The notes: a model not told the origin generated them from the letters alone. A DNA stretch of 42,843 nt from Ministeria vibrans ATCC 50519 (GCA_943704425.1 CALSCP010002404.1:1-42843); one strand, 5' to 3'. Positions 8,922 to 40,791 are shown, numbered from the stretch's first letter. Numbers and translations are program-made.

Positions 8922-11505
8922 ATGAGCTCTTCAAAAAGCCCTCCAAATTTTTGTACAGACTGAGAGTGGTGTTTTTTTTTTCATTTTCGGTTCGTTTCGT
9001 TTTTTCCGCCTCGCTCTCTTTCCGCTGTCGTTCCCTCGCGCCATCCTTCATACTGTGCGACTTATCCGTCTCTGTTTTGTTCTTGTTCGTCTCTCTCTCT
9101 CGCTCTCTGCAGCGTTTGACTACGTTTCGCGCAATCCGGTCGATGACGAGCTTCTGTGCCACATTTGCCATCAGCCGCTCGTTGACCCGCGAATGCTCGC
9201 CTGCGAGCACATGTTCTGCGCCGTGTGCCTGCAAAGCGCCCTCGCCCAAAAGCTCGCGTGCCCCGTCGATCGGAAGCCCGTCGTGCCGCAGGAAGACGTC
9301 AAGCCTGTGGCGAGTCCCTTCCTGAAACTACTGGGCAAGTCCAAAGTGTACTGCTCGAACAAAGCCAGCGGATGCGACTGGGTTGGGCCTCGCAGCAATC
9401 TGCTGACGGACCATTTGCCCGGCTGTGATCAGACGCCATGTGCCCATCGCGAGGCGGGGTGCAGCTGGACCGGGCGAGCACAGGCGATGGCGGCACATGT
9501 TGCGTCTGACTGTGTCGCCGCACCCGTCGCCTGTCCACACGTCCGCGACGGTTGCACAGAGAAGGTGCGACGAGATGCACTGGAGGAACACGAAGTGTCG
9601 TGTGAGGTTGGCGCGCGAGTGCACGCGGAGGCTATGGTGCGCGAAGAGGCGGAGCGAGCGGAGGCCAAGGCGGCGGCGGTACGAGAAGCGCACGAACGAC
9701 GTGTCGAGGCGCGCAAGGCGCTCTGCAGCCGACTCAACCCCAAGAGTACAGAAGTGGTGACGATGAACGTTGGTGGACGTGTCTTTCAGACTTCTCTTGC
9801 GACACTGCGTGGCGAGTCAGAGTCAGTGTTGGCGCAGCTGTTTGCCTCGGGTGAGGTGGACGTGCTGGAGCGCGACGAGACAGGCCGCGTCTTCCTCGAC
9901 TGCGACCCGGACGCGTTTGCGCTTGTGTTGCGGTGGTTGCGCTCAGGAGTGGTTCCGATTGTCACGAGCGAGACGACACTTGACAATGTCATGAGTCTTG
10001 CGCGTCTGCTGGACCTCGACCGACTTGTGGTTGGCCTCGGCGGTGAGCTGAGTGATGACGAGGCGGAGGAGGAGGAGGATGAAGAGGAGGAAAATAGTAT
10101 GTCGACGGTGGTTTCTGCATCTGCATCTGCACGCACACGTGTTACACCGATCTCAACGAATGTACCGGTGAGGGCGGTGCCGCGTGCAAAGACACAGCGC
10201 CAGCAGATGGAGTTGCTTCAGCTGATTGCTTTGTTTAAAAGTGGTCAGCAACAGGTGTCGCTGGCTGGCATGGACCTGCGTGGCTACCACTTGGCTGGCA
10301 TGGACCTCTCGTGTGGCAAGAAAGGGGCGTGTCTGCGCGGTGCAGTGTTGGCGAACATGGACCTGTCGGGTGTGCAGCTCAAGGGTGCAGACTTATGCAA
10401 TGTTGATCTCGGTGGTTGCACGCTGAGCGGCGCCGATTTGAGTGATGCGAACATGACTGATTCAACCCTCAATGGTGCAGACCTGACGGGTGCGAACCTC
10501 ACTGACTCGAACCTCACTGGCGCAAATCTTACTGGTGCGACGATTGACTGGTCGCGCATGGCCAACACACTCACTGGAGTCGATCTGTCAGGTCATGACC
10601 TCTCAGGCGTTGACTTGTCCTCGAAGGATTTGACTGGCGCGAACCTCACTGGCGCGAACCTCACTGGCGCGAACCTCACTGGCGCGACGATTGACTGGTC
10701 GCGCATGCCCAACACACTCACTGGAGTCAATCTGTCAGGTCATGACCTCTCAGGCGTTGACTTGTCCTCGAAGGATTTGACTGGCGCGAACCTCACTGGC
10801 GCGACGATTGACTGGTCGCGCATGGCCAACACACTCACTGGAGTCAATCTGTCAGGTCATGACCTCTCAGGCGTTGACTTGTCCTCGAAGGATTTGACTG
10901 GCGCGAACCTCACTGGCGCGACGATTGACTGGTCGCGCATGGCCAACACACTCACTGGCGTCAATCTGTCAGGTCATGACCTCTCAGGCGTTGACTTGTC
11001 CTCGAAGGATTTGACTGGCGCGAACCTCACTGGCGCGACGATTGACTGGTCGCGCATGGCCAACACACTCACTGGAGTCAATCTGTCAGGTCATGACCTC
11101 TCAGGCGTTGACTTGTCCTCGAAGGATTTGACTGGCGCGAACCTCACTGGCACGACGATTGACTGGTCGCGCATGGCCAACACACTCACTGGAGTCAATC
11201 TGTCAGGTCATGACCTCTCAGGCGTTGACTTGTCCTCGAAGGATTTGACTGGCGCGAACCTCACTGGCGCGAACCTCACTGGCGCGAACCTCACTGGCGC
11301 AATTCTTACCAACGCATATCTCACCAACGCAACTGTGACAAATGTGACACCTCCTTCGCCACTTAAATGTCCAAACTGTCATGGCCCTGCCACTGTAATT
11401 AAAATCACTGTCAAGAGTTCCTCCCGAGGCCGAAACGATTATCTCGTGAGCTACGGTTGGTTGTGGGGCACTTGTGCCACTCACACAGACTACTCTTACT
11501 TCTAA
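8922..11505 (+). CDS. RING + TRAF-type Zn fingers + KCTD-type BTB + pentapeptide repeats + C-terminal CxxC motif
   Basis: Proposed first exon 8922-8952 (MSSSKSPPNF) and intron 8953-9112. RING CHICHQP...CEHMFCAVC...CPVD; TRAF-like VYCSNKASGCDW...H...C and CPHVRDGC; BTB MNVGGRVFQTSLATL...FLDCDPDAFALVLRWLRSG; A(N/D)LTG repeats. Confidence 0.85.
10540..11300 (+). repeat. Six near-identical 117-bp (39-aa) coding tandem repeats with nested 15-bp units
   Basis: ACGATTGACTGG recurs at 10540, 10687, 10804, 10921, 11038 and 11155. The period is 117; the first gap is 147 (117 + 2x15). Confidence 0.95.
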
Positions 11506-11779
11506 TGCACACATCTTCTGAATATACAAATCACACTCAGTGTCTCGTCTGTAGTTTTTTTTTCTTTTTCTCTTTTCTCTTTTTTTTTTCTCTCCTGCTC
11601 GTTTTTCTTCTTTTGTTGTCACACACACGCTCAGTTTTTTTTATAATGTATTTAACTGATTCGGTCATTTTTGATTCTGTCGTTCTTTCTGAGCTATTTG
11701 TGTGTTGTTGACTTTCGTTTGTGAGTGATGATCATTAATAATTATTATTACTTTTCTTCCAAAATTTTATTACTTCTCT

Positions 11780-11821
<42 letters not shown>

Positions 11822-11908
11822 TATTATTGTTCTTTTTACACTAATAAAAATTATTATTAATAACACTAATAATTATAATACTACTAATTATTTACAAACC
11901 ACTTAATT

Positions 11909-14900
11909 TTAAACATTGACGGCCGCGGCGTGATAGGCCACAAGTGCCTCGCGATAAAGCTTGCGACGCTCTGCCATGGGATCGCTCTCGGTGGGCTCCT
12001 CCGTCGACGTGATCGTCCCGTTGTCGACAACAAGACGCATGCTTGCGAGAGTCAATTGAATCTGTTCGTGACTCTCGCCCAGTGCGCGCCGTCGCAACAT
12101 CAGTGCCCGTGCAAGGGTGTCAAAAGCTTCGGCGGGACGCTCCATGTCAATGAGACAGTTACCCATGTTGTGCAGCGTGTTGGCTACACTCACCATGGAG
12201 CCGGCCTCGCTGGCAACGCCACAACGCTCCTTCATCTCGAGCGCACTTTGGTGAACACTCAGTGCCTCGGCATACTTTCCTTCGCTCACAAACGCCACAG
12301 CCTGGTTGTTCAACACGCGCGCGAGCAACACGCCCTCGCCCACGGTGCGTCGGTACATCTGGGCCGTCGCCGAGTACATGTTGATGGCGGCTAGCAAAGG
12401 GGTTTCGCGCACAGCGCCACTCGCTGTCGACGCATCCGTCTCGTCCACCTCCACCCGCTCAACAGTCGTCGACTGGACCGCCTCCTCTTGATCATCTTTG
12501 TTGTCGTTGTTGTCGCTGCAAGCGGCAGCGCGTGCCTTTGCTGTCTTGGCCTCCTCGCGCGACATCAAGTAGTAGACGTCACCCAGGCTGTGCATAGTGC
12601 GCGCCACGTCAACGTGCGTGGGGCCGAGCATGCGACGGCGCATGGCCAGCGAGCGCTCCAGCGCTGACATAGCCTCGCTAAAGTTGCCCATGTCCATGCA
12701 GCCCTGGCCATAGCTAAACAGCGTCGCGGCCAACATGAGATTCTGAGCGGCACCGCCCGAGGAGACGCGCCGACGACTCGACATGGAGAGCTTGAACCAG
12801 TCGATGGCCTGCTGGAGTTTGTGCCTGCGCAAGAAAACCCGGCCCATGCGGTAGAGGACGGTGGCGCGCTCGTCTACGGGCAGCGCCACGTTGAGCGCAT
12901 CGTCAAAGGCATCCTTGGCCTCGTCGTAGTGTCCCAGGTCGTAGAGGAGGGTGCCGAGACCGGCGTAGACACGACCCGCCAGGAAGAGCACATGGTTGTC
13001 CTCGTCAGACGAGTCGCCGCTGTACACGGCACCACCAGTAGCACCAGCACTAGCACCAGTGAGCGACGACAGGTCATCGACACTATCGCTGCCACTGCGA
13101 GAGTTGCGATGGTCCTGACGCCCCATGTTGGTGCCATAAATGGTAAGGAGGTGCGCGAGGGTGTCGAGAAGATCGAGAGCACGCGGCTTGTTGTGAGCCG
13201 ACTCGAGGTAGTAGGCAGCAAGTCGCTCAATGAGGACAAGGCTGCGCGCGTCGTACGGCGAAAGGGTTCGCGAGACGGGGTTATGGACGCTGCTGTGAAG
13301 CGCAATGAGGCGCGTACAGAGTTCATCGACCATGAGCACTGCCTCGTCGACAAAGCGACGCATGGTGGGTGGGAAGGCTGCCGCGCGATTGCGCTCTTCG
13401 GGCATAAACTGCCACATGTGTAGAACAATTTCAACGGCAATGCGCAGGGGAACTACACAACGGTGCTCGGAACGTCCGCGTCGCGCTGCCTCGATGTCGT
13501 CCGACGACGCCAACGAAGACGAAGATGTCGCAAGAAGACGATCGTCGTTGGAGTCGACATAATCAACCACAAGCGAGTGAACGTGAAGGCGACTGCCAGA
13601 CGCGTCCAGGTTGACAATGCCCATGCCAAGAAGTTGATCGAGGGACTGGTGAACGGGCTGGGCGAGACGGATGGGAAAGGTGGGGTCGTCGGCGCACTCG
13701 ATCCACTCAATGGGAACGCCGTGAGCGGTGGCGGAGGAGCCAAAGGCGGTGATGACGCCAAGAAGTTCATAGGAGGCGTGGGTGAGCATGGCAGACTGGA
13801 TGACGATGGCAAGAAGACGCGAGAAGGGCACAGCGGGGGAGTCGGGGACAAAGGAGGGCATGCGACGGAGCAGTTCGGGGATGTTGAGACGAGCTCGGGC
13901 GCGCAGAACGGCACCGGCAATGCTGATGACAAGCGGGTGACCCCTCATATGACTGGTGGTGAGAACGGCGAGCTGAGCAAGCTCGAGCTGGCGACCACTC
14001 TTAAGACGCATAAGGGTGGTTGAGTCCGAGGCGTTCATGGTGGGAACGGCAAGCGTGGCAAGCGGGCTCGGGTAGAAACGAGTGGGCTCGAGCGAGTGGG
14101 TGGTGACAATGACGAGGCCGTCGTTGCTGAGGGACGCCTGGTGGGGCACGAGCGAGCGCAGGAGCACGCCGCTGCTAAGGTCATCGACAACGACCACCCA
14201 GTTGCGACGGACGGAGAAGAGTCGTTCGTTGACAAAGGGAAAGAGGGCGTCGAGGCGGAGGGTGCGAATGAGGGGTTCGAGGGCCGGCTGGAGGGTGATT
14301 GCAATAGCGCGAAGGTCCTGCTCGACGAGCTCAGTGGACGCGGCGTTGATCCAGAACACTTGCGTGTCATGCTCGTTGCGCAGGTCTATTGCAATGCGTG
14401 CGGCCAGCGTGGACTTGCCGACACCCGACGGCCCATAGAGCGACAGGAGACGGGGCGACGAGGCAACGCGAGCGGCGGGCGACAGGTCAATGAGGTCAAC
14501 AAGGGAGTCAAGGAGCGACTCGCGACCGACAAAGGACTCTTCGACAAGGGACTCAAGGCAGGCCGGGATGGGTGCGGCATCAGCGGCGTCGGTAAAAAAG
14601 TGGACGCCGCATGAGGAGGTGACCGACTTGCGCAAGTTGGACGCACTCGATTCAACGTTGCGGCGGCGGCTACCGTCTGCCATGCCACTATCGTCGCTCG
14701 TGCTGCGGTGGACGGAGCCGAGCGAACTGAAGAGAGACGATTCGGAGAGAACCTCGTAGGGAATGCTGCGCTCGACACGGTGAAGCGCGATCTCAATGTC
14801 ACGGGCAGTGCGCCAGATGGAACGCAGACCGGTGCGAACGGTGCGCAGGTCGGAGACAAGTTGCTGAAGAAGTTGCTGCGCAATGAGAAGATCCTCTTCT

Positions 14901-16508
14901 TCGGGCGTGAGGGAGGACATGGAAGGTAGGGCAGGTGGCAGCGACGTCGAAGAAGTGTGGTTGGTCTCGGCGGTGGCGCGGCCGCCTCTGTCGTCGCCGT
15001 CGTCGCCGTCGTCGTCATCATCGTCGTCGTCGCCGTGAGTGGTGGAGGGTGGCAAGGCCTCCATGGAAGAGTCAATGGAGCGGGACACTTCGAGCGACAG
15101 GCACGCAACCTGTTCATGCACATGGGAGACTTTGGCAGCAAGTTTGCGTCGTATCAAGGGTGGCGCCGCCGAGGAGGAGGTGGTGGAGGAAGAAGAAGAT
15201 GTCGTGGAGGGGGCGGCGGCGTCGGCGGCGAGTGACGAAGTCGTCGATTGTTCGAGGAAGAGCGTCTCATGGCTGGAGGCAATGCTCGGAGACGCAGGAG
15301 GAGAAGAATGAGAAGAAACGCGGGTGGTAGAATTATTATTGGAAATAGACGCGGTGCGACGGCTGCGGGCGTTCGCTTGGGCTTGGGAGACGTCGTGACG
15401 GGCGGCAATGACGAGCGACTGGAGCGACGTGAAGAACTCGTCAAAGGCACGCAGCATGGCCATTTGATGAGCGTGGAAACGATTCATTTCGCTGACCCAA
15501 GCATCCATAGCGGCCGTCTTTATGTCAATGGTGCAGGTGATGTTCTTCAGGCGCGACGATGAGAGGGACGCCAAGGAGGTGGTGTCGTCGGGAGGGGCGC
15601 CCATGTCGAGGGAGGTGTCTGACGGAGCAGGCACCAACGGGTTGAATTGCGAGGTGTACGAGGAGACGGTGGAGATCGAGGAGACGGGAGCGTTCTTGTC
15701 GCGAGCGGTCGCGGAAGGGTTGGAGGAGGAGGAGGAGGAGGAGGCGGGCCGGGTGAGCGAGTGGTCGGCGAGTGCACGGCGTGCGCGGATGCAGAGGACG
15801 CGGAAGCGCTTGAGGTCGTCGGAGTGGACGGAGCGCACGAGGCGGTGTGCCCAGATGCTCTTGTAGGCGTCGTGGAGGTCGCGCAGGGCGCTGCGGACGC
15901 CAAGCGCGAAGACAGTGCAGTGGACAAAGAAGGAGAGCAGAAGCGACAGCGTCGCCTGGCCGGGCGTGTGCTCCTCGCGAGGGATGGGCGACAGCGTTTT
16001 CATGTAGAGCTTTGCAATCTCCCATGGAACCGTTGCCCACAGTCGCGGGTTGCTAAGTGAGAAGTTGTGTTTTGTTATAATAACTATTATTATTATTATT
16101 ATTGTTTTTTTTTTCTGAGTTGGTTTTTGAAAAAGGCAAAACGAACATTGCAGGTTGGAAGGTAAAGGGAGAGAGAGAGAGAGAGGGAGAAAGAGGAGAA
16201 GGGACGTGCCTGTTGGAGAGGGACGTCTCGTCGATGCGGCTGGTGTGGAAGTGGTCAAGCAGACTGATGACTTTGCGACAGTGCGCACAGAGCTTGGAGG
16301 CGCGCGCGAGCACGGAGGCGCCGCCGAACGTGGCTGCCGTGGTGCATTTGCCGCATGCGAGAGAGCGGACCTGGGCGCGCTCGGCGATGAAGACGACGGC
16401 GGAGTTTGCATGGGCGCACAGCAGTGGCGAGAGACTGCCGACCAGGCGCCAGCACTGCTCCCAGTTGGCGCTCTCCGAGGCGGAGCCTGCCGGGGGTCGG
16501 TGCGCCAT
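11909..16508 (-). CDS. NLR-like STAND protein: CXorf38/DUF4559-like N-terminal domain, NB-ARC NTPase, TPRs (exons 16508-16210, 16052-11909)
   Basis: FVGRESLL; Walker A GPSGVGKST; Walker B WVVVVDDL; VIVTT; GHPLVI (GLPL-like); LHVHSLV (MHD-like); kinesin-light-chain-type TPRs (LGPTHVDVARTMHSLG, VANTLHNMG). The upstream exon joins via a phase-2 GC-AG intron. Confidence 0.85.
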
Positions 16509-16833
16509 AGAGAAAGAGAGTGTGCACAGTAGATATTAACAATAATGAAATATTTAATATGAATATCTGTTTGCAGTCATAGAAGAGTCAGTCACATTTC
16601 TGTGTATCTTGAGACATAATTTCACAGGAACCAAAGTTGAGACTTCCCATAGTGAATGGGTGGCAGTAACACACAGTCATGCCACAGATAGCGGGTAGAA
16701 TGGCACGGTGACCGTCTGTCTGTTAATGTTGACGTTTGTGTGAATAGAATTGTCAACAGTCAAAATTCATTCATTGTTGCGTTAAGAATACAGAGCATAA
16801 TAATAAATAATCAGTTTTTTTTCTTGTTGCGTC

Positions 16834-18721
16834 ATGTCACAGCTCTCCATTGGTATCAGACGCACTTTTTTCTGGTCATTTCCGATGAAATTGTCCTTAT
16901 CCATCGTTTGCGAAAACCCCCCCCCCCTCATCTTCCATCTCCTGCTGTGTAGCTATTGCGGCGGCAAACGAGGATGCGACGCACGCAAAGTACCTGCAGG
17001 ACCCTGTACATGGCATCATCTCGATGTCGCCGCTCATCTCGCAGTGCATCGACACGCCGCAGTTTCAACGGCTGCGCGACTTGAAACAGGTTCGCACGCA
17101 CGCACGCCCTCGCTGCTGCTGCCGCTGCGTGTGCCAGCACTGCCATCGGGGCGACGCGTCTGGAGTCTTTCTGTAGAGAGAGAAAGAGAAAGAGGGAGAG
17201 AGAGAGAGAGAGGGAGAGAGTTCTGGTTAAGCGCGCGTCTTTGGTTTGATGTGTTGTGGTCTATCTGTTTAATGTTCGTCGATCAGTGAGACGTATGATT
17301 TTATTACCTGTGTGGTGTGGCGTCGTCTGATGTGTCATGTTTGTGTTGTGACGTCGTCTGATGTGTCATGTTTGTGTTGTGGTCTCTCTTTCGACCTTCA
17401 ATGTTACGTCGATCAGTGAGGCGTATTGTTAGATGACCTGTGATGGTTTCGTCGGAGTGATTGTTTTTGGTTTTGATTCGATTTGAAGGGTTGATTTTGA
17501 GTTTGATTTGGGTTGGTCAAACCATATTTGTTTCGCAATGTTTCTTTGGGTTGTCTCAATTGAATTGTGAGTGGGTCGCAATGCGGTCGCTTTGCGCGAA
17601 CTGCTTGTTGTCTGATCAATATGATCTTTGTGTGTGCTTGTGGACCGACGGACCCGTCATTGCGACACGCTCATAATTGTGCGTCCCCTGTTTCAACCCT
17701 TCTACAACTAATGTGTGTCTTTGAATTGTTTTCTTTTTGTCAGCTTGGCATGACTTACTACATATTTCCCGGCGCGACCCACAACCGGTTTGAGCACTCC
17801 ATCGGAGTCGCTCACTTGGCCAAAACTTGGATGGAAATTCTCAAGGTACAACTCTTTTCGTATGTATGTGTCTGAGTGGGTTTGTCTCTCTGTTTTGTTC
17901 AAGAGTGTGTGGTGTGTGTTGTTTTCAATTTGTGGTTTTTGGGGTTTGGTTGAGTTTGCGACTGTGATTAGTTGTTTCATTGAATTGATTCGTTTTCGGT
18001 CGTTTGTGCTTTACAGTTGGTTTGAGACCATTCTGTTTGACTGGCTCGTTGTTACGAGCCTTTGTTTGTTTGTGAGTGGTTTACTCGTGTTTGTATTGTG
18101 TGTTGTGCGTATCAGTCAATTGCTGTTGAATATGCGTGCCTCGTTTTTCTATGTCGATTCACTTTTGTTTTTGTCGCATCACTTGTCTTAGGCAAAGCAG
18201 CCGGAGATTGACATAAACGCACGCGACATTGAGTTGGTGACGTTGGCGGGACTATGTCATGATCTGGGACACGGGCCCTACTCACATGTGTTTGATGGCA
18301 AGTTTATGCCTAGAGTGCGACCAGAGGTGCGCACAACACCGTTCCATTTACACAGAATACTGAAAGGATTTTGCGTCTGTAGCACAAATGGTCACACGAG
18401 AACTGGAGTGAGATGATGCTGGACTATTTGGTGAATGACAATGGCATTGACATTGACACGGATGATCTCAAGTAGAAACTGTATCAAGGCGAAAGATGTA
18501 TCAAACTGCTCCTCTTTTGTGTTAGGTTTGTCAAGTCATTGATTCAGGGGAAAAAACCACTGGACACGTCGCAACAGGAAAAGCGCTTTTTGTATGATAT
18601 TGTGAGCAATGAGCGGAATTCCATTGATGTGGACAAGTGGGATTATCTGGCAAGAGACTGTCTCAATGTTGGGATGAAAACAAGTATGCAACAAGGAAAT
18701 TGTTTGGGGTGTATGTATGTT

Positions 18722-18755
<34 letters not shown>

Positions 18756-20371
18756 CATGTTGATATTGATTTTTTGTGTGATATTTATTGTGAGCTGGGC
18801 TCTTCTGTTCCAGTTTTGTGTCAATGTGTGTTGCAGTCCCAGTCTCACTATTTATTTTGTCGTACTGTTTATTTGTTGTACGTTCATTCTACATTTGGAA
18901 AAATTCTCTTGAACATATTTGGAGTTTGTGAGTATCAATGAGGCTGTGTTTGTGGTTGTTGGTACTCTTGATGTTTTGAATAATCATTATTTTTCCACCT
19001 TGGTATATTGTTTGACGGCCAATAAAATATAAATGTGTGTGTGCGATTTTATTATTTGTATTGGGTGTGTAACTTTGTCTCTGTGTGCGTTTGTGTGTGT
19101 TTGTTTGCTTCCCCTCAGACTACGACTGTACGCGTCTGCTCAACTGGAGTCGTGTCATCGACGATGAAATCTGCTTTGCCGACAAGGAAGCATTCAACAT
19201 CTACGAGATGCTTCACACTCGCTATTCCATGTTCAAGCGTGTGTACACACACAGAGTGGGTCAGGTAAAAAAGAAGAGATACACGAGACGAGAATGCTTG
19301 TGTGTGTATGTGGATAAAAGAAGGACAGAGAGAGAGAGAGAGTGGAGGGTGAGAGAGAGTGTGTGGAGGGTGAGAGAGAGTGAGAGAGATAGAGAGGAGG
19401 GAGAAAGAAAAAGTGATAGAGACAGAGAGAAAAACAAAGTGATAGAGAGAAGGAAAGTGGGGTAAATTTGTGGCATGGTGATGTGTGCTGACTGAGTCTG
19501 TGCTCAGGCAATGTCACGCTTGTGCTGATGCTAACACATTATGTGACGGCGTTTGTGGGGTTTGCTTTTTATTCAAATGTTCGAATGGTGACCAACATGT
19601 CGGTTCTGACCCTTAAAAATATGATTCTTAAATTTATGAATAGGCCATGGAGCACATGGTTGTGGATGTGCTGACACATGCGGACGAGGCCATGGGCATC
19701 AGTGCATCTGTGGATGATCCTGCTCAGTTTATGAATATGACCGATTGTTTGTTGCGTGACATTGAGCGCAGTACCGTAAGTAGAGGGAACATGTATAATT
19801 TAGTATGTTTTTCAAGTCAGTGTATTGGTAGTACATTGTACATTGCTGTGATTATCAGGTTGTTGGTTTTGGATTCACAATCCCACCGGGCAGTTGTTTA
19901 TACTTGTGATTTTAAATTATTCTATCTCGTAATTCAGCCAACTTGTATTAATGCTTTGTTCGCTGGCATTTTGTGTTTTAGAGTGACAACCTCGCTTCCG
20001 CACGCGACCTCACGCGCCGCATCCGCACTCGTCAGCTCTATCGTCTTGTCGACGAATACCCCATTGAGCAGAATGTACGCCACTCACTTCAACGTAGTCA
20101 GGTCACTCCCGAAAAGATTGCCAGTTTCTCGTCTTCGGGCGAGCTTGACGCCAAGGACATTATTGTCGACTGGTCTTGCATTCACTTTGGTACTCCTTTT
20201 TTTTTTTTTGTTGTGTTTTTGTGTGTGACAAAAACTGTGTTTGGTGTCCCATGCGTAAGACTATGTGTTTTTTATGTACAGTACGTCCAGCGCACACTTG
20301 TTATTTTTTTGATGAGCACACACTAATTTAATTAATAATAATAATTATTATTATTATTCTTTTTCTTATTC

Positions 20372-20427
<56 letters not shown>

Positions 20428-20962
20428 ATAATATTTTCTGTAATAATATTATTAATGCTAATGATTTTTGTTTTTGTAGGTCTCAGCGACGGAAGTAATC
20501 CCCTCGCACACACTCGCTTCTTTTCTCGTTGGGATCCTTCCGAAGCTTACCACATTGATCCAATGCGCGTCTCTCATTTGCTGCCCAATCAGTTTCGTGA
20601 GGACTTTGTGCGTATCTATGTGCGCGACGCCGATCTCATGTACGACGCGCAAAATGCTTTCAGGCGCTTCAAAAAGGCCGTGCTGCCCACTACGTCATCA
20701 TCTCAAATTGATAATCAGTACGATAAAAATTGACAAACAACAAAACAAGGTGTGGTTGACACGGCAGAATGTGTGTAGGGGCTTGACCATGCCTTCAAGG
20801 GACGCGTCGCCTCGGAAGGGCACTCTTTCCACTCTGGGAATGGAGTCGCCCAGTCACCGCAAGAGACGTCGCATTCAGTTTGAGGAAGGCCCGTCGACAA
20901 GTGCGCTCAATGCCGCCTCGCCTGCTCCCTCGGATGCGCAGTACAGTGATTTGGAGTTGTGA
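16834..20962 (+). CDS. SAMHD1: SAMHD1-like HD-domain dNTP triphosphohydrolase without SAM domain (about 11 exons)
   Basis: Spliced motifs [19 protein letters not shown]|[72 protein letters not shown]; all junctions are GT-AG and in frame. Confidence 0.95.
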
Positions 20963-27314: not shown

Positions 27315-28536
27315 ATGGAAGTCTCCGTTGGTGCGACCGTCGGGTTCTCTCTCGGACTCGTCGCGCTCGCCGCCGCTCCCACGCGACTGCACAACACCAC
27401 CAGTCTGTATGCTGGCATGCTCGTTGGCTGCGCCGCGGGCGCCTGCTACGCCGGCCTGTCATTCGGCCAGGCAGTCGCGAGATCAGTTGCTCTCTTCAGT
27501 CTCGCCGTCGCAGTCGTCTTCGCCATCGCCATTGCCATCCACGGTCTCCCGAGCGACCTCAGCGCTCGCACCCTTCTTCCGCGTATCCTGCGCGTCTTTC
27601 ATGCGACGATGAAGCTTTTCTTGCGGTACCACACGACAATCTCTCCTCTTCTTGTTTTGTACTCATCCTAACCAAACTTATTAATCGAATAGTGTGCGTT
27701 ACCTGCACCTCGTCCCTCACCTGTGGATCCCCCCTTCCGCAACTCACATCATCAACGAGCGAGGCCTCTCCCTTGACTTGCATCGACCCAGCGGCGAAGC
27801 GAAAGAGTTACTTCCTGTCGTTGTGTTTGTGTATGGCGGCGCGTGGGGCAGCGGTTCACGCGCACAGTATGCCAAAGCGTGCGGAACGCTTGCTGAGAAG
27901 TGCGGCGCGCTCGTGTGTGTGGGAGACTATCGACTGTCTCCTCACGCGCACTGTGCTGACATGGTAAGCGACGTGCGTGACGCGTTGGTGTGGACTCTTG
28001 AGCATTGTGCGTCGTGGGGCGGCGACCCCTCTCGTGTGTGTGTGGTGGGTCATTCGGCAGGCGCCCATTTGATTGCGCTCACCTTGTTGCGCTGCGCCTC
28101 GCTGTTTCGAGAGCGCATATGCAAAGTGGTGCTTCTCGCGGGTGTCTACGACATCGACAGTCACTATGCGTATGAGCGGTCGTGGGGTGTTGAGTTCATC
28201 TCGCCCATGGCGCCCGCCATGCGCGTCGATGGATTTGCCGAGAACTCTCCGTTAACGCAGGTGGAGCGTCTTGCGTCGGGCGTGTCTTTATGTCGTGGCA
28301 CGGTGCTCGTGGTTCATGGCGACCAGGATGACGTGGTGCCCGTGAGTGCGTCTCTTACGTTTGCCAGTGCCCTTGAGCGCGCGGGACAGCCCACCGAGTG
28401 CGTGGTGCTGCCAGGTGTGGCTCACGCGGCGTTTGTAACGGATCTCATGGCGGGTACTAAGGCGCTACGTTCGCTAGGTGGCCATGCGAGCCTCCTCGAG
28501 CGCATTGTGGAGTGGGTGAGAATACGAGACGTGTAA
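27315..28536 (+). CDS. Alpha/beta hydrolase, isoprenylcysteine methylesterase (ICME)-like, with hydrophobic N-terminus (2 exons)
   Basis: PVVVFVYGGAWGSG, DYRLSP, WGGDPSRV, GHSAGAH, LAGVYDI, VHGDQDDVVP, catalytic His in GVAHA. Exon 1 encodes transmembrane-like helices; intron about 27627-27692. Confidence 0.85.
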
Positions 28537-31433: not shown

Positions 31434-37330
<5,897 letters not shown>

Positions 37331-37968: not shown

Positions 37969-40791
37969 ATGTCGAAAATGAGCTCATCATCGAGTGATTC
38001 CAAGGCTCAGCAGAACCTGTACCGGATCCCCCCGTACTTCTACATCCATGGTAAGTGCTTGCGGGCGCTGCTGGCCTGTGCGCTGTCGTTTGGCTCATTC
38101 GCTCTCTCTTTTCCGCAGTTCTTGACCAGAACAGCAACATCACCCGTGTTGAGGAGGGTCCCATGACCTTTATCCGCCAGGACAACGAGAAAGTCATCAT
38201 TGGACCCGAACGGTATGACAAATCCTCTTTTTTTTTTTTTTTCTGCTGACTCACTCTCTTTTGTTATTATATTTTTATATTATTGTATTATTGTTCTTTT
38301 GATGGATTAGGATGATCACTGTGCCGCCTCGTCATTACTGCATTGTGAGCAACCCTGTGCTTCGTGACGAGAAGGGCGATGTCGTGTTTGCCCATGGACA
38401 GGCCAAGCTCCGCTACGGCGACACAGAGATTCGCTTGACACAGGTGAGAAACAATATGATTTTGTTATTATTATTGTCGTATTATTTATATCCACTAATG
38501 AAACATTCTCCACATAGGAACCTTTCCCGCTGTACCCCGGCGAGAATGTGGTGAAGCAAATTACAGCACTGGCCATTGTGAATGCAAACGCGGCGCTGCG
38601 TCTGCAGGCAGTGCTCGACTTCGCCGACGAGAAGGGCATCGATCGCGTCGCGGGCGACGAGTGGCTCTTTGAGGGTCCCGGCACCTATCTGCCGCGCGTC
38701 GAGGTGCAAGTGGTGGAGACACTGCGCGCCACCATTATCCGCCCACAGCAGGCGCTGCGTCTGCGCGCCCGAAAGGATTGCACTGACCGCGAGGGCAACA
38801 AGCGCGTCACCGGCGAGGAGTGGATTGTGCGCAAGGTGGGTGCCTACCTGCCGGGTGCTGACGAGGAGGTTGTCAAGACAGTCGATGCCTTTGTGCTGAC
38901 CGACAAGAAGGCGCTGCATCTGTCTGCGACGCGCTCTTTTGTCGACGACTACAAGGTGGAGCGCAAGAGCGGCGAGGAGTGGCTCATCACGCTCAAGGAC
39001 ACCGAGACGCACATTCCCAGCGTCTACGAGGAGGTCATTGGCGTCGTTCCCATCACGACGCTTACCAACCGCGAGTACGCGATTGTGGTGGACCCCGTTG
39101 GCGAGGATGGCAAGCCGCAGCTGGGCCAGAAGAAGTTGGTGCGCGGCGAGATGTCCTTCTTTTTGCTGCCGGGAGAGTCACTTGAGGGTGGCGTGCAAGG
39201 TCTGTTTGTCCTTGGTGAGGACGAGGGACTCATTTTGCGCGCGAACGAACAGTTTAAGGAGGGCAACGTCGCACGCGAGCCCGGCGACCGCTGGATGATT
39301 CGCGGTCCCGCCGAGTACGTGCCACCCTGTGCCGTCACCGTGGTGCAGAAGCGCAAGGCGATTCCCCTCGACGAGAACGAGGGCATCTACGTGCGTGACA
39401 CCAAGACGGGCCGCGTGCGCTCCGTGTGCGGACAGACCTACATGCTCAACGAGAACGAAGAGCTCTGGTCCAAGGAACTGCCCAAGGCCATTGAGGATCT
39501 GCTCGCTGGTGGTCGCGACCCCGTGGCCGATCGCAACGCCAAGGGTTCCTCGTCCGCGTCCAGCTCGTCCTCTGGGTCAGCGGGCGCCACAAGCACAACC
39601 AAGCGCGACAAGACACGCGTCATCAACTTCCGCGTGCCCCACAACGCCGCCGTGCAAATCTACGACTACAAGGAGAAGAAGGCACGCGTCGCCTACGGTC
39701 CCGACCTCGTCATGTTGGGACCCGACGAGCAATTTACGCAGCTGTCGCTCAGTGGCGGCAAGCCCAAGCGCCCGAACCAGATTCGCTCGCTTGTGCTCCT
39801 GCTCGGCCCCGACTTCTGCACCGACGTTATTACCATTGAGACAGCCGACCATGCGCGCCTCCAACTGCAGCTGTCGTACAACTGGCACTTTGACGTTGAC
39901 CGCACTGGCGAGTCGGCCGACGCCGAAAAGATCTTCTCGGTGCCCGACTTTGTGGGCGACGCATGCAAGGCGATTGCGAGTCGCGTGCGCGGTGCCGTCG
40001 CCGCTGTCAACTTTGACGACTTCCACAAGAACTCAGCCAAGATTATTCGCTCGTCCGTCTTCGGCGTGTCCGAGGACGGCAAGGTGCGCGACCGCTTCTG
40101 CTTCCCGGCCAACAAGCTGGTGATCACGTCGATTGATATTCAGTCGGTGGAGCCGGTGGACCAGCGCACGCGCGACGCCCTTCAAAAGTCGGTGCAACTT
40201 GCCATTGAGATTACGACCAACTCACAGGAGGCGACGGCGCGCCACGAGGCGGAGCGACTCGAACAGGAGGCCAAGGGACGTCTGGAGCGCCAGAAGATCA
40301 ACGACGAGGCGGAGGCAGAGAAGTCACGCAAAGAACTGCTTTTGCTACAGGCGGCGTCGGCAGCCGTCGAGAGCACGGGTCAGGCCAAGGCGGAGGCACA
40401 GTCGCGTGCTGAGGCTGCCCGCATTGAGGGCGAGGCGGCCGTCGAGCAGGCGCGTCTCAAGGCGCAGGCAAGCGAGATTGAGGCGCAAAGCGAACTGACC
40501 CGTCTCACCGAGGCTCGCGGTGCCGAGAACAAGTACATTGGCGAGACGAACGAAATGGAGATTGCCAAATCGCAAGAGATGGCCAAGATTGAGACGGGCA
40601 AGTTCAAGTCGATGGTGGATGCACTCGGAGCGGACACACTGCGTGCCATTGCGACGGCAGGCCCTGAGATGCAGGTCAAGCTGCTGCAGGGTCTGGGCAT
40701 CAAGAGCACTCTCATTACCGACGGAAACTCCCCCATCAACCTCTTCCAGACCGCTCAGGGTCTTATTGGCGGTGCGACTGGCCAGCAGTGA
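37969..40791 (+). CDS. MVP: Major vault protein (exons 37969-38050, 38119-38212, 38312-38443, 38518-40791)
   Basis: [10 protein letters not shown]|VLDQNSN; vault repeats ([29 protein letters not shown]); shoulder [19 protein letters not shown] and [23 protein letters not shown]; cap helix; [12 protein letters not shown]. Confidence 0.98.

Follow-up and report, generated by a model that had tools for sequence, protein, structure and literature searches.

Could an NLR-type protein carry a head of the human CXorf38 (DUF4559) family, and would such a head still cut RNA? The question is raised by a gene of Ministeria vibrans ATCC 50519, called the NLR-like gene below, which lies at 11909-16508 on the minus strand of a 42,843-nt stretch of DNA (GCA_943704425.1, CALSCP010002404.1:1-42843; hereafter the window) and has two exons and a 1480-aa product. 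Human CXorf38 has no tested biochemical function; a study of 2013 predicted that its family acts as a HEPN RNase in antiviral defence. In that work, Anantharaman, Makarova, Burroughs, Koonin and Aravind presented CXorf38 as a novel HEPN family of the Swt1-like group with an inserted Zn ribbon, reported its fusion to NACHT, DEATH, CARD or ankyrin domains in amphioxus and cnidarians, proposed a defence role against RNA viruses and listed the family as ‘active’ (PMC3710099). In our assessment it is fairly probable that the NLR-like gene encodes a tripartite STAND/NLR-like protein, in which a zinc-ribbon head of the CXorf38-type HEPN family is followed by a linker, an NB-ARC domain and a TPR region, and that the head probably does not cut RNA but would serve in sensing, in regulation or as an adaptor.

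The NLR-like gene is transcribed and spliced

The start codon is the ATG at 16508, with an in-frame stop ten codons upstream (16538-16536). From this ATG runs a stretch of 99 codons that ends in a CT-rich and then A/T-rich segment, and a 1500-codon open reading frame (ORF), in another frame than the first exon, leads down to 11909 on the minus strand. As a test of splicing and expression, we aligned public runs over positions 11600-17500. The splice from 16210 to 16052 was present, with no differences, in transcript contigs of three runs (X1, X2 and X5). Record 2 of X1 crosses the junction directly, and so does record 15 of X5, a polyA RNA-seq run of a marine metagenome from a separate study. 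Record 8 of X2 is a 4565-nt contig that corresponds to 11894-16052 plus 16210-16520, gapless across exon 2, and is the full-length mRNA of the NLR-like gene with its single intron. The transcript contigs start between 16520 and 16718 and extend to 16210, and contigs of the DNA run X7 retain both edges of the intron (one up to 16069, one from 16203). The junction codon is AGC, for serine. According to these results, the NLR-like gene is real, transcribed and spliced.

The intron sequence is of low complexity, CT-rich and then A/T-rich, and its ends are non-canonical. We also considered an in-phase GT donor at 16224, which was rejected because every transcript contig uses 16210; moving the cut by 1-2 nt yielded no canonical splice ends either, so the GC..AG ends were retained. 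Read depth over the gene shows one peculiarity. A run of Asp codons at 14990-15036 on the minus strand (eight Asp, then Gly/Asp) draws many unrelated high-depth contigs, with loose ends in every run. The depth spikes at these positions are repeat artefacts and not expression.

The head is a divergent DUF4559/CXorf38 homologue

Sequence comparison identifies the head as a genuine, though divergent, DUF4559/CXorf38 homologue. We scored the window, as 819 six-frame segments, with a hidden Markov model (HMM) built from 150 DUF4559 domains, all of them external (all 41 long members scanned match PF15112). The frame of exon 2 gave 34.6 bits and an E-value of 5.5e-10 over HMM positions 102-189, while the runner-up segment gave an E-value of 0.045. 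Because of this difference, the ordered motifs of the head go beyond chance. When segment 15803..16052 was scored, the same positions 102-189 were matched at 33.6 bits. The frame of exon 1 reached 6.8 bits over positions 58-100, directly upstream of the exon 2 match and collinear with it. A second comparison was made by hhalign with alignment A4, whose 77 rows are paralogues and short outsiders (64 short external members) and of which 74 match PF15112. Here the exon 2 piece was matched from column 102 with 97.3% probability (E 1.7e-11), and exon 1 over template columns 70-92, just ahead of the exon 2 match, with an E-value of 0.014.

At the level of residues, the head agrees with the conserved profile columns C66, C69, C81, C84, H95, W112, W117, E118, A120, K121, M124, L144, L145, C151, F154 and H175. 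Its four Cys align with columns that are 94-100% conserved in the 150 external members, and would form the putative zinc ribbon. The scaffold motifs W...W-E-x-A-K-x-F-M and L-L-N...C..F are matched, with Tyr in place of Phe in the first of them, and the N..P..W motif of the family straddles the splice junction with the correct spacing.

Some results weigh against this homology. The domain being split by the intron, homology had to be scored per exon. Pfam PF15112, the sole Pfam match of the exon 2 head piece, covered profile positions 96-141 of 305 and gave only 18.0 bits (E 0.0022) against a cut-off of 27 (17.9 bits in a genome-wide six-frame scan), and exon 1 alone neither matched PF15112 in Pfam nor was significant by itself. 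In the Pfam comparison proposed by an earlier preliminary description of the locus, PF15112 was matched on the exon 2 piece, but under its cut-off, and no HEPN model was. A profile made from the paralogues only, which found 20 loci, missed the head of the NLR-like gene, and the A2 HMM scored it at only 10.9 bits. Finally, a word-based protein search with region 1-110 of exon 2, limited to the full-length size range, yielded 374 candidates, none at E <= 0.01, and hence no orthologue. Used as a single query against its own genome, the exon 2 head piece retrieved only itself, and in the protein atlas it met only unnamed clusters, with recognition under the useful level.

One could argue from these data that the N-terminal region is unrelated to DUF4559/CXorf38, and that a helical region containing Cys and His resembles the family by chance. 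The Pfam scores under threshold, the non-significant exon 1 and the unsupportive sequence search and protein atlas would fit such a view. We nevertheless regard it as extremely improbable in the light of the independent 150-member profile, with its gap between 5.5e-10 and 0.045, the hhalign probability, and the conserved spacing of two exons collinear with the profile. Moreover, at least 13 paralogues, and likewise 55 of 58 long external members, have the domain at the same N-terminal place ahead of a STAND ATPase. As for the miss by the paralogue-only profile, it arose because the head resembles the animal-type consensus (K121, M124, C151 and F154) more than it does the paralogues of its own genome.

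The active-site signature of the head is degenerate

The signature columns of the family profile are Asp140, Arg170, Asn171 and His175. D-R-N-H occupies them in all 16 scorable paralogues and in 135 of the 150 outsiders, while the NLR-like gene has T-K-S-H (T134, K164, S165 and H169). Among 167 sequences it is alone in having as many as three changes. Because X5 record 15, an independent RNA contig, has the same bases, the degenerate site is not an assembly error. An active HEPN domain is recognised by an R-x(4-6)-H motif, here R-N-x-x-x-H, together with the invariant Asp of the family, and this combination is absent from the head of the NLR-like gene. With T-K-S-H in place of the D-R-N-H of the paralogues and most outsiders, the head probably does not itself act as an RNase; by its residues, it is classed as a homologue whose site is degenerate and not as an active HEPN RNase.

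It is unlikely that the head has remained an active HEPN RNase, working through Lys164 and His169 together with other residues, in which case the protein would be a self-contained sensor, switch and nuclease like its paralogues or RNase L. In favour of such activity, His169 is kept in a column that is 100% conserved in the family, Lys recurs in two external members with D-K-N-H, scaffold and zinc ribbon are otherwise fully preserved, and the gene is expressed. Lys may at times partly replace Arg, which counts against a silent head and is the reason why we only infer the loss of activity. Yet three of the four signature residues have changed jointly (D to T, R to K and N to S), which is seen in none of the 166 other sequences, and Arg is catalytically required in the characterised HEPN RNases Cas13, RNase L and Ire1.

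A degenerate site might also mark a decaying member, still transcribed, whose head drifts without function towards a pseudogene. The NLR-like gene has lost its catalytic residues, diverges more than any other copy in the genome, with a head that the paralogue profile misses, and has a very long linker of low complexity. Decay of this kind is, however, very unlikely in view of the intact frame of 1480 codons, a non-canonical intron that is spliced correctly and the presence of polyA RNA. The four zinc Cys (all of which are kept in only 5 of 17 paralogues), 13 scaffold columns, Walker A and B and strong TPRs are retained, which points to a selective loss of the active site. Taken together, a lost signature next to a kept scaffold, frame, splicing and P-loop speaks for a non-catalytic role and against decay.

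The head is joined to an NB-ARC domain and a TPR region

Downstream of the head, a disordered or helical linker of about 450 residues without any Pfam match leads to the NB-ARC domain. This domain scores above its Pfam cut-off and has Walker A and B motifs, which assigns the protein to the STAND/NLR-like NB-ARC class. Near the C-terminus, TPR_12 was matched in 4 stretches (E 1.4e-32, 112 bits) and TPR_10 at 62.8 bits, along with TPR_1 and TPR_2. A DUF4559-type head, an NB-ARC domain and four TPR_12 stretches are thus encoded in this order on one spliced mRNA.

The preliminary description, which was made from the DNA alone, had anticipated much of this. It had joined the exon 16508-16210 to position 16052, which is the exact junction of the three transcript runs, polyA RNA included, and the peptide strings that it quoted are found on the minus strand. 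The DUF4559/CXorf38-like N-terminal domain that it proposed is borne out by the external HMM, hhalign and the conserved columns; its CxxC/zinc motifs correspond to the four Cys residues of the zinc-ribbon insert, and the NB-ARC (36.2 bits) and TPRs (112 bits for TPR_12) that it placed after the head were recovered by Pfam. Lastly, it had called the Rx4-6H motif degenerate and maybe non-catalytic, in agreement with K-S-I-W-A-H in place of the family R-N-x-x-x-H and with the change from Asp to Thr.

HEPN nature of the CXorf38 family

The family alignment has an invariant R-N-x-W-A-H motif, and Pfam PF18731 (HEPN_Swt1) was matched by 34 of 77 family members at E <= 0.01, with a best value of 1.7e-6. 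HEPN_DZIP3 and HEPN_RiboL-PSP were matched by one member of the 77 each. A metagenomic relative with a DUF4559-NB-ARC layout (P0115) came close to the HEPN_Swt1 cut-off, with 26.5 against 27.5 bits, while exon 2 of the NLR-like gene matched no Pfam HEPN model. We also modelled the head of paralogue L008, which was predicted as an all-helical bundle into which a small beta element is inserted (predicted local distance difference test score 90.9, predicted template modelling score 0.88).

The structural comparisons did not confirm a HEPN fold, and are to be set against our reading. Foldseek, run on two models of the L008 head against the PDB, gave no match at E <= 0.001. When the L008 head was compared by VIA with 48,161 chains, PbAbiF (8vz6) was found with a Z of 5.7 over 145 aligned residues, a value within the noise of helical bundles, whose top Z was 7.1. 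Swt1 (4pqz; Z 5.5, 117 of 136 aligned, root-mean-square deviation 3.6) and AF_0298 (2hsb; Z 5.3, 95 of 126 aligned) lie within the same noise, and the three HEPN proteins rank 22-41 among unrelated helical bundles in the VIA top 50. A sequence search of the PDB with the A2 profile returned nothing significant, the top match being a CRISPR-associated protein with an E-value of 0.33. The HEPN-like relation of CXorf38 that the preliminary description gave was already published in 2013 (PMC3710099), but structure comparison did not show the HEPN fold. Its further suggestion, that the gene hints at an immune role for the CXorf38 family, falls away as a novelty, because both a proposed antiviral role and the NACHT/DEATH fusions had been published (PMC3710099).

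Paralogues and relatives

The assembly that we scanned comprises 29.7 Mb in 2860 contigs. It contains nine PF15112 loci, six of them above the cut-off, with a best score of 47.8 bits; the NLR-like gene is the weakest. In nearly all nine, the head stands at the N-terminus of an ORF of 800-1500 codons that also has NB-ARC or NACHT/NPHP3_N, and several of the DUF4559 ORFs also have an APAF1 winged-helix or helical domain, or WD40. A profile of the paralogue heads raised the count for the genome to at least 18 DUF4559-like loci (E < 1e-7), of which at least 13 lie on STAND ORFs. The sensors of these paralogues are WD40, APAF1-type helical or unrecognised, and the head is often contained in one exon.

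Several loci depart from this pattern. The ORFs that hold the heads of L018-L021 are short (155-351 aa), and no STAND part was recognised in the same frame; these heads may be stand-alone genes or first exons. Near-identical heads were seen in L011 and L015, which lie on different contigs. In L013 (G000:C1329:84000-91000), with the layout DUF4559-NB-ARC-APAF1, a short run of N lies just upstream of the head match; since its head begins at profile position 64, a gap or an exon further upstream is likely.

Outside the genome, a search of 1.84 billion representatives with the A2 paralogue profile gave 565 proteins at E <= 0.001, of which 142 reached E <= 1e-10. The domain lies within the first 60 residues in 144 of the best 150 external matches. 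Among 41 long external members, dsRBD was found in 18, NACHT in 12, TPR_12 in 5 and NB-ARC in 4. The named outsiders come from corals, amphioxus, fishes and molluscs, and include a Branchiostoma ‘NLR family CARD domain-containing protein 3-like’. Two metagenomic proteins, P0120 and P0042, have the order DUF4559-NB-ARC-TPR by Pfam. Like P0115, each of them consists of one long ORF, on a contig nearly without other prokaryote-style gene calls, and for this reason P0120 and P0042 are probably from other eukaryotes. The clusters of P0010 and P0115 hold 156 members in one and 38 in the other, from ENA metagenome assemblies with contigs of 4-17 kb. This suggests one or a few uncultured eukaryotes with DUF4559-STAND genes that are common in some sampled habitat.

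A possible mechanism and its implications

STAND NTPases, such as Apaf-1 and the plant and bacterial NLRs, and HEPN RNase sites that form by dimerisation, as in RNase L, Ire1 and Cas13, are the basis of the model that we propose. A ligand bound by the TPR or other repeat sensor would relieve the autoinhibition of the NB-ARC domain, and the oligomerisation that follows would, by analogy, cluster the HEPN heads. In the intact paralogues, paired heads could then form an RNase site from R-N-x-x-x-H and cleave RNA to bring about defence or cell death. In the NLR-like gene's protein we judge it reasonably likely that this RNA-cutting step has been lost; the dead head may pair with an active paralogue, or bind RNA without cleavage. 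A point against the model is that we found in the literature no test of RNase activity, oligomerisation or an immune role for any protein of the CXorf38 family.

The pairing can be taken one step further. The protein might be the dead-head partner in a network of HEPN-NLR proteins, where its silent head pairs with active paralogue heads and gates or licenses their RNase, comparable to plant sensor/helper NLR pairs or to pseudo-enzyme regulators. We hold this more specific proposal to be quite unlikely. If true, and with at least 18 loci in the genome, it would mean that CXorf38-HEPN/NLR immunity, including pseudo-nuclease regulators, predates animals or arose outside them.

The same head has been recruited repeatedly, in a marine microbe, to NB-ARC or NACHT switches with TPR, WD40 and other sensors, which widens the known range of HEPN-NLR proteins. 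These compact and intron-poor genes are suited to biochemical tests of the CXorf38 family. Among them, the NLR-like gene is a natural variant, with the dead-looking head as its one distinctive feature, and might be used as an internal negative control or be a candidate regulatory subunit.

Features of the gene and its surroundings

The coordinates of the NLR-like gene and of its paralogues are collected in Table 1.

Table 1. Parts of the NLR-like gene, counted from the first base of the window, and its DUF4559-STAND paralogues, given by locus
Feature	Position	Strand	Description and evidence
Exon 1	16210..16508	-	99 codons + 2 nt; HEPN-like helix 1 (A-N-W, aa 14-16), zinc ribbon, D-H-F-H stretch; transcript contigs
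Zinc-ribbon insert (putative)	16278..16355	-	CxxC 16344-16355 (aa 52-55) and CxxC 16278-16289 (aa 74-77)
Spliceosomal intron	16053..16209	-	157 nt, GCACGT...ACTTAG, non-canonical GC..AG ends; skipped in X1, X2 and X5
Exon 2	11909..16052	-	Single uninterrupted ORF to stop, 1381 codons including stop
C-terminal half of DUF4559/CXorf38-type HEPN domain	15803..16052	-	N-P-R-L-W, P-W-E-I-A-K-L-Y-M (16001-16027), L-L-L-S-F-F-V-H-C helix, degenerate motif
T134, replacing invariant Asp	15950-15952	-	Profile column comparison
Degenerate HEPN motif Y-K-S-I-W-A-H	15845..15865	-	aa 163-169; K164 and S165 for family R-N; H169 retained
Linker	14459..15802	-	Ser/Ala/Thr/Asp-rich, two helical stretches, Asp run near 14990-15032; composition
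NB-ARC STAND NTPase	13895..14458	-	Pfam PF00931, 36.2 bits against a cut-off of 23.5
Walker A G-P-S-G-V-G-K-S-T	14408-14434	-	Motif reading
Walker B V-V-V-V-D-D	14177-14197	-	Motif reading
G-H-P-L motif	13928-13942	-	Motif reading
MHD-like V-H-S	13568-13585	-	Beyond the NB-ARC Pfam span; motif reading
TPR sensor region (TPR_12, TPR_10, TPR_1)	12095..12973	-	Pfam
DUF4559-STAND paralogues	L008:1419-5789:-, L010, L012, L014:982-5322:-, L015:1802-6019:+, L016, L022:2307-4820:-, L023		Profile and Pfam

On the plus strand, at 16815-17096, a transcript lies head to head with the NLR-like gene; it starts about 300 bp from the ATG and skips a GT..AG intron at 16852-16951 (X2 record 13). Seven ORF pieces of the plus strand at 16834-20959 had no Pfam match at E <= 0.001. 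The convergent neighbour, at 9055-11505 on the plus strand, is an 816-codon ORF with RING and TRAF-type zinc fingers, BTB_2 and about ten pentapeptide-repeat stretches (E 1e-69). Further along the plus strand lie an alpha/beta-hydrolase (27694-28536; Abhydrolase_3, E 8e-26), a fragment like the six-hairpin domain of bacterial alpha-L-rhamnosidases (34930-35703, E 3.4e-15) and a major vault protein gene (38548-40791) with Vault repeats and the shoulder domain. An 860-aa Logan product is identical to the latter over the ORF. The nearest named relatives of this vault protein, at 72-75% identity, are those of animals, Capsaspora and the opisthokont ‘Opistho-2’, which hints weakly at a holozoan affinity of the organism. 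Between 32001 and 32991, (TG)n at 32001-32119 and (TTA)50 at 32842-32991 lie on either side of a 684-N assembly gap (32158-32841), and because of this gap and these arrays the long ORFs found there are artefacts.

Comparison with known systems

P0120 and P0042 have, by Pfam, a three-part architecture identical to that of the NLR-like gene. Together with P0115, they differ from it in DUF4559 scores of 84-94 bits and in keeping R-N-H (E-R-N-H in P0120), and the similarity between the NB-ARC domains is weak. The DUF4559-STAND paralogues of its own genome share the order of head, switch and sensor, but they keep D-R-N-H, use other sensors and are too distant for a link by HMMER. The family also occurs in a B-box/FNIP protein of Dictyostelium (PMC4554924).

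The animal fusions of CXorf38 with NACHT, DEATH, CARD or ankyrin likewise place a zinc-ribbon HEPN head N-terminal to a STAND NTPase and C-terminal repeats. In the M. vibrans gene, by contrast, the switch is NB-ARC and not NACHT, the sensor is made of TPRs, and the host is a unicellular marine organism with a small genome. In our search of the literature we found no description of HEPN-headed NLR or NB-ARC proteins in protists.

Other HEPN families offer analogies at a greater distance. RNase L and Ire1, of the KEN type (PMC3710099), are a model of how such a protein may work, since they combine a repeat sensor, a nucleotide-binding module and a HEPN RNase activated by self-association; they belong to another HEPN family, though, with a C-terminal HEPN domain and a pseudokinase as the switch, and the NLR-like gene lacks their Arg. 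The DZIP3-HEPN-NACHT expansions of cnidarians (PMC8260672) and the HEPN-STAND proteins of bacteria (PMC3710099) share a HEPN head on an NLR-type switch and occur as multigene expansions, but their heads are of other HEPN families, HEPN_DZIP3 being touched by a single one of our 77 members. The C-terminal HEPN domain of Swt1 (PF18731, 4pqz) represents the nearest characterised HEPN clade, as seen in the 34 cross-matches and in the Swt1-like group of PMC3710099, although it has neither the zinc-ribbon insert nor a STAND fusion and its structural Z is within noise.

Both the layout of a HEPN-headed NLR and the immune hypothesis are therefore already in the literature. What sets the NLR-like gene apart from the published CXorf38 family, listed as ‘active’, is the loss of the D-R-N signature, and what is new here is a divergent, probably non-cutting member.

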